Sequence record: OR532817.1
Length of the DNA stretch: 64,000 nucleotides
Strand: one strand, 5' to 3'
A program made the translations under genes and the position numbers. The notes beneath the pieces were generated by a model. The model was not told where the DNA came from and searched no databases. It worked only from the letters and a program-made list of their open reading frames with translations. Below, one piece after another: positions 1-3,055 of this stretch (within the stretch, counting starts at the first letter, position 1; the number at the start of each line of letters is the position of its first letter).

Positions 1-504
1 AATCTTTATAATGTTTCTAAACAAGTATCTGGTGGTGATTTAATAAGTTATCATCCATACAAAGAAGAAATTTCCAAAAAGAAATCTGAAACAGCCAAAC
101 GTCAATATAAAGATGGTACTAGAGATCCAAAAACAAATTCTAGACCGGGAAGCAAAAATGGAAGATGGAATGGTGGTTCAGTTGCTAAACATGAAACATG
201 TAAGTGTGGTAAGTGGAAACAATATAGTGCTAAACAATGTATATCATGTTATGATAAAAATGGAGAAAATAACCCTTTTTATGGAAAAGAACATACAGAA
301 GAAACCAAAAAAATATTATCAGAAAAGATGAAAAAACGTTCAGAAAATGGTTATCTTCCACCTAATACCAATAAAATAGAAATCGATGGAATAATATATA
401 AATCACAAGCTGAAGCTGCTAGAAAGCTTGGTGTATGTGATGGTACAATAATTCATCGTTTAAAATCAACAAATCAAAAATATAAAAATTACAAACGTCT
501 ATAA
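1..504 (+). CDS. I-TevI-like GIY-YIG intron homing endonuclease, C-terminal part (5' end outside window; missed by the ORF track)
   Basis: Frame 1 is open from base 1 to TAA at 502-504: NLYNVSKQVSGGDLISYHPYKEEISKKKSETAK...SRPGSKNGRWNGG...CKCGK...CISC...GENNPFYGKEHTEETKKILSEKM...KIEIDGIIYKSQAEAARKLG. This is colinear with the I-TevI linker, zinc finger (CxC..CxxC), NUMOD3 and HTH as I recall them. Confidence 0.9.
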   Translation, partial: NLYNVSKQVSGGDLISYHPYKEEISKKKSETAKRQYKDGTRDPKTNSRPGSKNGRWNGGSVAKHETCKCGKWKQYSAKQCISCYDKNGENNPFYGKEHTEETKKILSEKMKKRSENGYLPPNTNKIEIDGIIYKSQAEAARKLGVCDGTIIHRLKSTNQKYKNYKRL

Positions 505-682
505 TGCCGAACGACTATCAAACGCACATAGAAATATGGAAGCAAGTAGAGTACACTCAAGCGAGTGGAAACGGGGTGGGACTTCATTATGAAGTTCGTG
601 ATATAGTCTTATCTATATGGTAACATATAGCAGTACTGTTTAAGTACGGATACAGAGGTAGCGAACTGTATTGAAAATAATG
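1..682 (+). mobile_element. Group I (IA2, td-like) self-splicing intron in thymidylate synthase, 3' portion
   Basis: P7 strands GACTAT (513-518) and ATAGTC (603-608); P7.1 CATA-GAAA-TATG; P7.2 CACTC-AAGC-GAGTG; P8 GACTTCA-TTA-TGAAGTT; P9 CTATATG-GTAA-CATATAG; P9.2 ATACAG...CTGTAT. Ends ATAATG (omega G at 682) like the T4 td intron, followed directly by in-frame TS coding sequence. Confidence 0.9.
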
Positions 683-979
683 TCAGCAGATACATTCTTG
701 GGGGTTCCACTGAATATCACATCATATTCAGTACTCACCCATATGATAGCACAAATTACTGGATTAGAAGTTGGTGAATTTATCTGGAACGGTGGAGATT
801 GTCATATTTACTTGAATCATATCGAACAAGTAAAAGAACAATTATCACGAGATACAAAAGAATTACCAAAATTGTGGATAGACCCAAGAGTTACAGATAT
901 TACAAAATTTACAATGGATTCTGTTAAATTGATTGGATATGATCCACACCCGGTAATCAAAGCACCAATGGCAGTATAA
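683..979 (+). CDS. thyA: Thymidylate synthase, 3' exon
   Basis: [15 protein letters not shown]...GDCHIYLNH...[14 protein letters not shown] carries the ThyA motifs (R)SxD, N and HIY and the typical C-terminus. The track's start at 671 lies in intron sequence. Confidence 0.93.
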
Positions 980-982
980 TAT

Positions 983-1012
983 AAAAGGGAGACATTAAGT
1001 CTCCCTTTTTTT
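983..1012. terminator. Bidirectional intrinsic terminator
   Basis: AAAAGGGAGAC-attaa-GTCTCCCTTTT between convergent genes. Confidence 0.85.
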
Positions 1013-2543
1013 ATACACCTACAACACAACGACCGAGGAATCTCATATCAGGTTCCATCGGAACTTGTAGTTTTACTTTATCCAGTTCAATTGACATATT
1101 CTCTACTGCAACATTTTCATAAAACCCATTTGACATAAGTTCTTGTACCTGTACTGACTTTGGTTCATCTACGGTAATGACCAATTCATAGTTGATACCA
1201 TCACTTGAAGGTACCCACGAAGACATATCAGAAATGTTTATTGTTTCGGAACCACTGATGCGTTTCCATTTACCACTGATTTTTTGAATTAATGTATTAA
1301 AGCTAGGAGAAAAAGCTAACATACCATTTTCACCTAAAGTATTATTGGATGCATCAATAAATGGTGGTCTAAACCCGATCTCTGTTAATTTAGTTTCCCC
1401 ATTATAGCCATCAACCGTCGGATTTTGTGGGAAAAATAAAATTTCAGTATTTTTCCAACGCTGAACTTCTTTCGATGAGGCAGTTGCAGAAAACTCACCA
1501 GTTACCGAACCCCTGTGATATAAACCAGTACTACTATCAGACCATTTACTTGGGTCAATTCCGGGGTTTTCAGTTGGATCATAGGTCTTGTTGTTAAATG
1601 TAATCGCTGGTTTATCAACAGTACCATATGTTGCTGCAAAACGTCCCTCAGCTTCTGAAATACCATCATCATACATTGCATCACCGGTTCTACGTAAACC
1701 ATCTAAACCATATAAATCAAGTACGGATTGTACATCGGAAACTGATGTTGGGAATTGTCGTCCATATGAATTTACTAGTTTATTATCAAATGTAACACTT
1801 GTGGCTGCAATACGGGTAGCATATTGACGAAGACTTTGCCATTTAGTACCAGTACTGATGATCCAGTCACTATCACGTAAGCCTGGGTCATAACTAGCAT
1901 TACCAACCTCGAATTGTTCTGTTAGATCTGGGTCTGATGTTAATGATATAAGACCTTCATGACCAGTAGTTGGGATTTGATCTACATTAAATCTTGCATA
2001 AGCAGAGGTAACTGATTTAGAACCATTACCATCTGTGGTAAAATAATATTTAATTTCCAACCAGTCACCCTCACCTGATGGGTTGGTTGGTGTGAATATA
2101 ACTGGTGATGTTGAAGGATTTGTAGTACTCATGTGAGTAGTAGCTAGATCAACAATACCACGAGTTACGTAATAATGACCTGAATTGGTTGAGTCCGTTG
2201 GTGGTAGATTATCGTAAACCGAAATTTCTGATGGTGGATCTACATCATCGGTATTTGGATTAAAAGTACCTTTATATGTCATACCATTCAATAATGTATC
2301 TGGTAAATTTGCAATTGAAATTTTACCATTAGCATCTAATTGAACAAAACGTCGATATTCTACTGTATCATCTAATAATTGTAATGTACCTTCAAAAGCT
2401 TCCCATTCACTATTATAACGAATCATTCCCGGACGTTTAATGTCATTTGGTGGATTTTTCAATAGTGCTTTTGGTAATTCCAAGAAGCCATTAGTACTAT
2501 CGATAATAACACCAGAATCACCACGTATTCTATATATACTCAT
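1011..2543 (-). CDS. Putative virion structural/fibre-associated protein (510 aa)
   Basis: GMIRYNSEWEAFEG and QLDANGKI motifs typical of T4-like fibre and structural proteins; upstream TAAATA near 2578; structural neighbourhood. Confidence 0.55.
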   Translation of the reverse strand: MSIYRIRGDSGVIIDSTNGFLELPKALLKNPPNDIKRPGMIRYNSEWEAFEGTLQLLDDTVEYRRFVQLDANGKISIANLPDTLLNGMTYKGTFNPNTDDVDPPSEISVYDNLPPTDSTNSGHYYVTRGIVDLATTHMSTTNPSTSPVIFTPTNPSGEGDWLEIKYYFTTDGNGSKSVTSAYARFNVDQIPTTGHEGLISLTSDPDLTEQFEVGNASYDPGLRDSDWIISTGTKWQSLRQYATRIAATSVTFDNKLVNSYGRQFPTSVSDVQSVLDLYGLDGLRRTGDAMYDDGISEAEGRFAATYGTVDKPAITFNNKTYDPTENPGIDPSKWSDSSTGLYHRGSVTGEFSATASSKEVQRWKNTEILFFPQNPTVDGYNGETKLTEIGFRPPFIDASNNTLGENGMLAFSPSFNTLIQKISGKWKRISGSETINISDMSSWVPSSDGINYELVITVDEPKSVQVQELMSNGFYENVAVENMSIELDKVKLQVPMEPDMRFLGRCVVGV

Positions 2544-2707
2544 TTATATATTTCCTCAATAAGTAATATTGTATATGGTATTTATTTTTCGATAATAAAA
2601 AAAGTTATTCTTGGAATTATATGTTTACACACAAACTACGGTACTTTTTCCATGAAAAATATATTCTTTATTTTTAATAAATTATTATATCAAAATCTTG
2701 AACCGTA

Positions 2708-3055
2708 TTATACAGATGGTATACTAATAAGGGGTTTCCATATACCGTTGTCTTTGATAAAAATATTAACGATGTTGGTTGTATCAATTTGGTAATATAC
2801 ATTACCATCTTCACCTGTACTGGAATCTGGAATATCTGTTCCTCGTAATATAGTACTGTTCAATTTAGTATTAAGATGGTTTAATGTAACCAGATGTTGA
2901 TCTTTGGTAGGTTCACCAGCTTCCACTGGCAATAATAGTGTGCCTTCGTAATTATAAATTTTTACATCGGTACCATCTGTGCTTAATTTTGCACCATTTT
3001 TACCAAGAACAAAATCCTTCTTCATAGTCCCTTCTAAGTTAGAAAAAATTGCCAT
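2708..3055 (-). CDS. Putative virion structural protein (115 aa)
   Basis: Fibre-type motifs EPTKDQHLVTLNHL and GTDIPDSSTGEDGNVYY. Confidence 0.5.
   Translation of the reverse strand: MAIFSNLEGTMKKDFVLGKNGAKLSTDGTDVKIYNYEGTLLLPVEAGEPTKDQHLVTLNHLNTKLNSTILRGTDIPDSSTGEDGNVYYQIDTTNIVNIFIKDNGIWKPLISIPSV

Follow-up and report, generated by a model that had tools for sequence, protein, structure and literature searches.

The thymidylate synthase locus of phage RCIP0023

The DNA analysed here is a stretch of 64,000 nt (the window) from sequence record OR532817.1, the 350 kb genome of Klebsiella jumbo phage RCIP0023 from sewage, which showed a 100% match to window bases 1-3000. The first 979 bases of the window carry the end of an endonuclease gene, the 3′ half of a ribozyme and the last part of a thymidylate synthase (TS) gene (Table 1). 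We regard this arrangement as a TS gene interrupted, between conserved Arg and Ser codons, by a mobile td-like group I intron of the IA type, and assign this reading a probability of about 0.85. An earlier note, made from the letters of the window alone, had proposed such an intron with an intact I-TevI-like open reading frame (ORF) in a jumbo phage of a probably Gram-negative host, and the identity of the phage bears out the proposed host. In what follows, L001 denotes the RCIP0023 record around the window, L002 the intronless locus of phage K64-1, L003 T4, and L004 Bacillus phage TimeGriffin.

The boundaries of the intron were determined by alignment to K64-1. RCIP0023 reads ...ACT CAA CGT, then the intron from TAATCTGAGCG to AATAATG, then TCA GCA GAT, and the intronless K64-1 sequence reads ...ACC CAA CGC TCA GCA GAT.... 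Comparison of the sequence upstream of the window with K64-1 TS located the 5′ splice site at L001 2654/2655, after CAA CGT; the first exon that the earlier note expected there, ending in Gln-Arg, is present. The intron is absent from eight of the ten Alcyoneusvirus records, whose match to the window begins at base 683 (K64-1, RaK2, Muenster and OU509535) or at base 713 (KP13-7 and phiKp_21). The homology step at 683 places the 3′ splice site at window 682/683, where ...AATAATG is followed by exon 2, TCAGCAGAT, which is colinear from base 683 with the intronless TS genes of K64-1, RaK2 and Muenster. The intron end and the exon restart at TCA GCA GAT, first read from the sequence alone, were thus confirmed by the intronless alleles. 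The intron is 1028 nt long (L001 2655-3682) and begins 345-346 nt before the window, and window bases 1-682 represent its 3′ two-thirds. The earlier note needs one correction, as no more than the 3′ 682 nt of the intron lie inside the window; P1-P6 and the GIY-YIG domain are located just outside.

Neither exon is damaged, and the reading frame is kept in each. With 211 codons in exon 1 and 98 codons in exon 2, the two together give a 309-aa TS, equal to that of K64-1, and the exon 1 protein is 100% identical to the K64-1 counterpart. In tblastn, the TS protein broke at residues 211/212 in RCIP0023 and at residues 218/219 in T4. As CAACGC in T4 (L003) is followed by 21 nt (TCAG...TTGGGT) and then by the td intron, the RCIP0023 site lies exactly 21 nt (seven codons) upstream of the td site, the distance given in the earlier note. 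What the comparisons in this and the following sections demonstrate is where the splice sites lie, that the RNA structure is conserved, that the enzyme modules are intact, and how presence and absence of the intron are distributed in the population. RCIP0023 was not mentioned, and an intron in Alcyoneusvirus was not described, in the literature searched.

Table 1. Features at the start of the window (positions in the window).
Feature	Position	Strand	Remarks
Endonuclease gene, 3′ part	1..504	+	Last 167 codons, TAA 502-504; ORF start 240 nt before the window
3′ ribozyme half	505..682	+	P7 513-518/603-608; P7.1 524-543; P7.2 554-567; P3 3′ strand 573-578; P8 579-597; P9 613-630; P9.1 633-647; P9.2 649-672; omega-G 682
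Predicted endonuclease binding region	683..723	+	Homologous to the td sequence bound by I-TevI; predicted cut CAAC/G in exon 1, outside the window
TS exon 2	683..979	+	98 codons from SADTFLG, stop 977-979; Pfam Thymidylat_synt positions 169-266, E 2.4e-38
Terminator-like hairpin GGGAGAC-ATTAA-GTCTCCC	987..1005	.	G+C-rich, between an A run and a T run; read from the sequence

Conserved secondary structure of the ribozyme

Ten introns were aligned: eight from jumbo phages (RCIP0023 and L007-L012 and L014), the ORF-less intron of TimeGriffin, and T4 td. L007-L012 and L014 are metagenome contigs that were found via the endonuclease protein; they share the gene order of RCIP0023, and their TS is split at the same point. 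The 5′ and 3′ intron halves were aligned separately, and pairs joining the halves were counted between both alignments. RNAalifold recovered P1, P2, P4 and P5 in the 5′ half and P7, P7.2, P8, P9, P9.1 and P9.2 in the 3′ half; P7.1 was added by hand, and the names P7.1 and P7.2 were given from position and from a comparison with T4 td. Standard pairs made up 99% of 405 cells in the 3′ half, and changes on both sides were found in 25 of 42 pairs. None of 500 shuffles matched the observed values, and partners slid by 1-3 columns paired in 27-46% of cells. P3, which joins the two halves, was paired in all 60 cells with five of its six pairs varying (CACCUC/GGGGUG in RCIP0023, CAUCUC/GGGAUG in L009, UCUAUC/GAUAGA in T4). 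P7, the guanosine-binding helix, was invariant, P4, P5 and P8 were supported, and compensatory changes were found in each of P7.1 and P7.2, which lie between the P7 5′ strand and the P3 3′ strand. The TimeGriffin intron aligned helix for helix, and its P1 begins at the same exon bases.

The helices at the splice sites fit the exons of RCIP0023. P1 is formed by ACGU/U (slash at the 5′ splice site) with AGCGU, its flanking pairs covary with those of T4, and the U.G wobble at the 5′ splice site was present in all ten introns. The terminal G before TCA was present in the eight jumbo-phage introns. P10 pairs CUGA of the guide with UCAG of exon 2 in RCIP0023, and this pairing was weaker in L009, L012 and L014. 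The guide, CUGAGCGU, is complementary to the ligated junction ACGU-UCAG, which indicates that the ribozyme is fitted to the Arg/Ser site. The RNA would self-splice: the guide and the exon 1 end ACGU would form P1, with U.G at the splice site, the same guide and the exon 2 start UCAG would form P10, and the intron would terminate in G.

The public record annotates two TS fragments, as would be expected if the insertion were not spliced and the phage depended on host thyA for TS. This is very improbable, as both exons are intact and in frame with an exon 1 protein identical to that of K64-1, the guide matches both exon ends, and the RNA structure has been kept by many compensatory changes while the exons of the lineage diverged to 61-84% identity.

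The RCIP0023 ribozyme belongs to the same class as that of T4 td and shares its set of helices, P7.1 and P7.2 among them. The two introns carry their ORF at the same location, and in both an in-frame UAA directly follows the 5′ splice site. The guide differs (GCGU in RCIP0023, GCCU in td) and is rewritten for the new exon context, the stretch from P6 to the ATG is much shorter in RCIP0023, and the 5′ segment is 106 nt as against 132 nt. In T4 td, a late promoter and a regulatory hairpin are located between P6 and the ATG. Core identity of RCIP0023 was 58% to T4 td and 55-64% to Firmicute introns at the Arg/Ser site. The core described as T4-like in the earlier note is therefore td-like group I, and not specifically T4-like. 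A closer relationship to Bacillus-phage introns was also considered, as P7.2 is identical to that of TimeGriffin, and was rejected on these overall core identities.

The first three intron bases (L001 2655-2657) are the in-frame UAA, at which ribosomes translating exon 1 should halt at the splice site. L010 has UGA there, and L012 and L014 have no immediate stop codon.

The intron-encoded endonuclease

The endonuclease ORF is complete and encodes 247 aa (L001 2761-3504, 744 nt). Four Pfam families scored above their cut-offs: GIY-YIG (26.9 bits vs 22.6), I-TevI_ZnF, NUMOD3 and I-TevI_DNA-bd. Residues 127-238 matched the DNA-binding domain structure of I-TevI (1I3J, E 4.8e-22), the nuclease domain structure 1MK0 was matched with E 8e-10, and identity to I-TevI was 42-43% over the full length. 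Residues were compared in an alignment of 13 proteins. The catalytic residues Y5, Y16, R26, H30, H39, E71 and N84 correspond to Y6, Y17, R27, H31, H40, E75 and N90 of I-TevI, and the zinc finger cysteines C147, C149, C160 and C163 to C151, C153, C164 and C167. None of the eight jumbo-phage copies has lost a catalytic or zinc-binding residue. The nuclease Asn and the first zinc-finger Cys are 63 residues apart, compared with 61 in I-TevI. Judged from its sequence, the endonuclease is a complete I-TevI homologue, with the same four modules at near-identical spacing and with CAACG in its target. The intact I-TevI-like ORF in a td-like group I intron was thus upheld, and the GIY-YIG domain, which had to be checked outside the window, was found to be intact with all seven catalytic residues kept.

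A ribosome-binding site, GAGG, is located 6 nt before the endonuclease ATG (L001 2747-2763). It falls within the stretch expected to form the P6 5′ strand, and the stop codon of the ORF abuts the P6 3′ strand; translation of the endonuclease and folding of the ribozyme may compete.

Predicted target site and cleavage geometry

The nicks made by I-TevI fall inside CA^AC^G, upstream of the sequence that the enzyme binds, and C1 and G5 of the motif are required (PMC5009752). In the intronless Alcyoneusvirus alleles, CAACG occupies positions -6 to -2 relative to the RCIP0023 insertion site; for the approximately 50 nt that follow it, and for window 683-723, a hand count gave some 74% identity to the T4 td homing site. 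As the RCIP0023 insertion is 21 nt upstream of the T4 site, the intron separates the cleavage motif from the binding site, whereas the T4 intron splits the binding site. The spacing matching that of I-TevI, together with CAACG at -6 to -2, predicts binding to exon 2 and, as with I-BmoI, cleavage 2-4 nt upstream of the point of intron insertion.

I-BmoI, encoded by the thyA intron of Bacillus mojavensis, is likewise a GIY-YIG enzyme acting on the homologous TS stretch. It nicks TS DNA at the positions nicked by I-TevI, and a G.C pair at -2 is critical (PMC3161791), although the two introns occupy different TS positions (PMC5009752). Its nicks are 2-4 nt upstream of its own insertion site, as predicted for RCIP0023, the top-strand nick lying immediately 5′ to G-2 (PMC3161791). 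I-BmoI binds intron-containing and intronless DNA alike, but the altered bases ahead of the insertion site prevent it from cutting the intron-containing form (PMC3664794). With a binding site of this type, wholly in exon 2, it is the replacement of the cleavage motif that must account for discrimination (PMC3664794). In RCIP0023, the intron 3′ end ...AAUAAUG before exon 2 has lost both C-6 and G-2, and position -2 is U in all eight jumbo-phage introns.

A mechanism can be proposed on this basis. The enzyme, encoded between the P6 strands, would bind approximately 30-40 bp of exon 2 DNA via its zinc finger, minor-groove helix and helix-turn-helix, reach upstream, and nick both strands in CAACG, 2-4 nt before the point at which an intronless allele would receive the intron. 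With the intron-bearing copy as the template for repair, the intron would be transferred along with nearby exon markers. The intron-bearing allele would escape cutting, its C-6 and G-2 being replaced by the intron 3′ end, which is the discrimination strategy of I-BmoI. An I-TevI-like reach combined with I-BmoI-like placement and discrimination is the best model suggested by our analysis.

The earlier note had instead expected a different binding-to-cleavage geometry, because the intron lies so close to where I-TevI cleaves. With such a geometry, the enzyme might, for example, bind across its own insertion site and cut some 23-25 nt further upstream. The enzyme is just 43% identical to I-TevI and has a 5-residue insertion before the helix-turn-helix, and in T4 the primary binding site spans the insertion site, all of which speak for altered geometry. 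We nevertheless consider it unlikely and did not find support for it. All DNA-binding modules are present, and the Asn-to-Cys spacing of 63 vs 61 residues leads to a zinc finger that is, according to a title cited in PMC3161791, the distance determinant of I-TevI. CAACG is kept at -6 to -2 in intronless alleles, and I-BmoI shares the nick positions of I-TevI despite the different position of its intron (PMC3161791, PMC5009752). The same geometry with a different intron position is the simpler reading; a new geometry is not needed to explain the site and runs counter to the conserved spacing.

The TS gene of the intronless phage KP13-7 (L094 105-1658, OP617745.1) is annotated as a single 517-aa protein, in which an in-frame insert of approximately 200 residues is without a match in Pfam. 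The 5′ part of the gene is divergent, its homing site reads TAT ATG CGT/AGC ACA GAT (slash at the insertion site), lacking the C of CAACG and the TCA codon, and its similarity to RCIP0023 begins 31 nt downstream of the insertion site (window 713). The KP13-7 gene could be an endonuclease-resistant or recombinant allele.

Probable mobility of the intron

A second intron-bearing isolate, vB_KpnM_W12-3, showed a 99.4% match to window bases 1-3000. Over 7972 flanking bases, just 11 differences separate the intronless K64-1 from RCIP0023 (6 of 2654 bases upstream and 5 of 5318 downstream), and three of the 11 differences are at -7, -1 and +21 of the insertion site. At -7 and -1, both intron-bearing isolates have T, and K64-1, RaK2 and Muenster have C; the U.G pair of the 5′ splice site takes its U from the T at -1.

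Among the matches listed in the search of public sequencing runs, 13 runs, mostly wastewater metagenomes, contain 50% or more of the words sampled from window 1-979. Run X3 contains one contig identical to the window over bases 1-680; in the contigs that follow, 14 of 390 and 25 of 298 positions are changed. A 21.5-kb contig in run X1 has 54 differences over bases 1-1500, every listed one at base 739 or beyond, and the change at base 739 is the RaK2 base. These contigs indicate that the same intron, with G at +21, is found both in a RaK2-like backbone and in the K64-1-like RCIP0023. On the sequence evidence, this pattern suggests recent homing with co-conversion, and precise intron loss in some lineages is a possible alternative.

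Under a rival reading, the intron would be a resident passenger that splices but does not move, its endonuclease being inactive or otherwise used, and the presence/absence pattern would stem from loss and not from gain. Precise loss could also explain the absence of the intron from eight of ten Alcyoneusvirus records, and the lineage is old within the phage group, where endonucleases at the same site are down to 44-58% identical. Such a passenger is nonetheless improbable in view of the intact catalytic and zinc-binding residues in all eight jumbo-phage copies, the presence of the identical 680-nt intron segment in a backbone whose sequence immediately downstream diverges by 5-8%, and the clustering of exon differences at -7, -1 and +21 that co-conversion predicts. 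Cultured Klebsiella phages that are nearly identical, some with and some without the intron, make direct homing tests possible.

Splicing, the exact cut positions and homing are what we infer here, and several observations weigh against the interpretation. P6 showed no convincing conserved pairing in the alignment of related introns, and P1 comprises just 4-5 pairs. Rfam gave no Intron_gpI match on the window, which does not include the 5′ half, or on L001 2000-4000, which has the 744-nt ORF inside; the interruption of the core by the ORF and the missing 5′ half are the likely cause. The TimeGriffin intron, which occupies the same TS site and has no ORF, scored 64.6 bits with Intron_gpI against a gathering score of 50. 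No splice joints were found in the contigs of four runs, of which the RNA-labelled ones probably are DNA or contain just a small part of the stretch; this result speaks neither for nor against splicing. In the enzyme, the 5-residue insertion between the NUMOD3 helix and the helix-turn-helix, absent from I-TevI and common to the two closest relatives, could shift the footprint. The cut site and the binding site are predicted from homologues at 43% identity.

The insertion site in other hosts

Use of the Arg/Ser site is not limited to the jumbo phages. Group I introns were also found there in Clostridium rhizosphaerae, C. nigeriense, a Clostridiales metagenome-assembled genome (MAG) and a Bacillales MAG, and the site is also used in TimeGriffin and in the IMG/VR contigs L108, L138 and L140-L142 (up to 254 kb). 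In the IMG/VR contig L139 (307 kb), the intron begins at the same CGT, and exon 2 resumes at a different point. The Firmicute and uncultivated-phage introns resemble that of RCIP0023 in the junction, with CA(A/G)CGT before the intron, G at its end and TC(A/N) after it, in the guide core GAGCG(C/U)C and the 3′ motif UAGCGA...UUGAA, and, for most, in carrying an I-TevI-like ORF. They differ in the core (55-64% identical, as stated above) and in their hosts, which, where known, belong to other phyla. A search of IMG/VR with the exact junction pattern gave no matches.

Among the loci compared, the td position was used only by L013, L109, L112 and T4. As use of the Arg/Ser site extends far outside Firmicutes, to Gram-negative jumbo phages and many uncultivated phages, the T4 position looks the exception. 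In the tree of endonucleases, the deep nodes were poorly supported, the two T4-site enzymes were not grouped, and the closest relative was not indicated; the weakness of the tree at depth means that neither a donor nor an order of site switches can be named.

Other arrangements were seen at TS genes. In L107, a 171-kb IMG/VR contig, TS has an intron with an I-TevI-like ORF, and exon 2 seems to resume at ...GAT ACA TTT TTA GGT; this insertion, at neither the Arg/Ser nor the td site, may be a third position. Among the I-TevI-like endonuclease genes of uncultivated phages and of some MAGs, most are outside introns, as in L016 and L019 (bacterial MAGs) and in L095-L106, L110-L137 and others (IMG/VR). 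These free-standing genes immediately adjoin an uninterrupted TS gene on either strand, which suggests intron-less homing at the same target. Many unrelated short wastewater contigs matched only window 535-576 and 592-635, that is, P7.2 and the P7 3′ strand with P9; they are conserved cores of other group I introns, not RCIP0023.

Relationship to the td and I-BmoI introns

From nicks at -2/-4 for I-BmoI and -23/-25 for I-TevI at the same TS positions, it is deduced that the I-BmoI intron is located between the Arg and Ser codons, and, by that deduction, the RCIP0023 position is the known I-BmoI-type site. The enzymes are distinguishable: I-BmoI, compared here by its published description, has no zinc finger and its ORF is elsewhere in the intron (PMC5009752), whereas the RCIP0023 enzyme has a four-Cys finger and its ORF is between the P6 strands. 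The target motif is CAACG for RCIP0023, as for I-TevI, and GCCCG for I-BmoI, and RCIP0023, unlike the I-BmoI system, is a Gram-negative jumbo phage. The zinc finger and the ORF between the P6 strands, as in td, mark the enzyme as I-TevI-like and not an I-BmoI orthologue. The earlier note had likened the insertion to the thy intron of Bacillus phage beta22 (Bechhofer et al. 1994), which is reported to lie 21 bp upstream of the T4 site and likewise counts among the closest known systems.

By sequence, the RCIP0023 element thus mixes both model systems, having a zinc finger, an ORF between the P6 strands and a CAACG target at an I-BmoI-type position. The combination of a zinc-finger I-TevI-type enzyme and a CAACG target with that position was not described in the searchable literature. 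It bears on the proposal that introns of this kind can pass from one TS site to another when cleavage preference changes (PMC5009752). We tentatively raise the possibility, which we hold to be rather unlikely, that the lineage is a natural intermediate between the two textbook TS introns, with a td-type ribozyme, a zinc-finger I-TevI-type enzyme, CAACG and the I-BmoI insertion site. If this were true, the intron would have shifted by 21 nt with no change of the endonuclease target, a layout with the intron next to the cut would be the common and probably older one, and the remote-cleavage layout of T4 would be derived. RCIP0023, K64-1 and the RaK2-like backbones would then form a culturable, near-identical intron-plus/minus system for homing and co-conversion. 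Irrespective of this, the RCIP0023 intron is a good new example of an already known type of mobile element, at an insertion spot known from Bacillus. I-TevI nuclease domains serve in genome-editing fusions, and natural relatives that share the motif, at 43-70% identity, could provide useful variants.

Annotation and the downstream region

In the public record, TS is entered as two separate coding sequences with no intron feature, and a 39-codon hypothetical protein, RCIP0023_00513, is annotated at window 504-623 (+), which is the P7-P8 ribozyme core. As this region evolves by compensatory RNA changes, the RCIP0023_00513 ORF is very likely spurious. The public annotation needs correction at both points, the two TS fragments and the 39-codon ORF inside the ribozyme core.

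Downstream of TS, the hairpin at 987-1005 (Table 1) is likely, from its sequence, to be a two-way terminator between TS and a converging 510-aa structural gene (1011-2543, minus strand). Rfam returned weak small RNA matches at 923-1120, which were caused solely by this hairpin.

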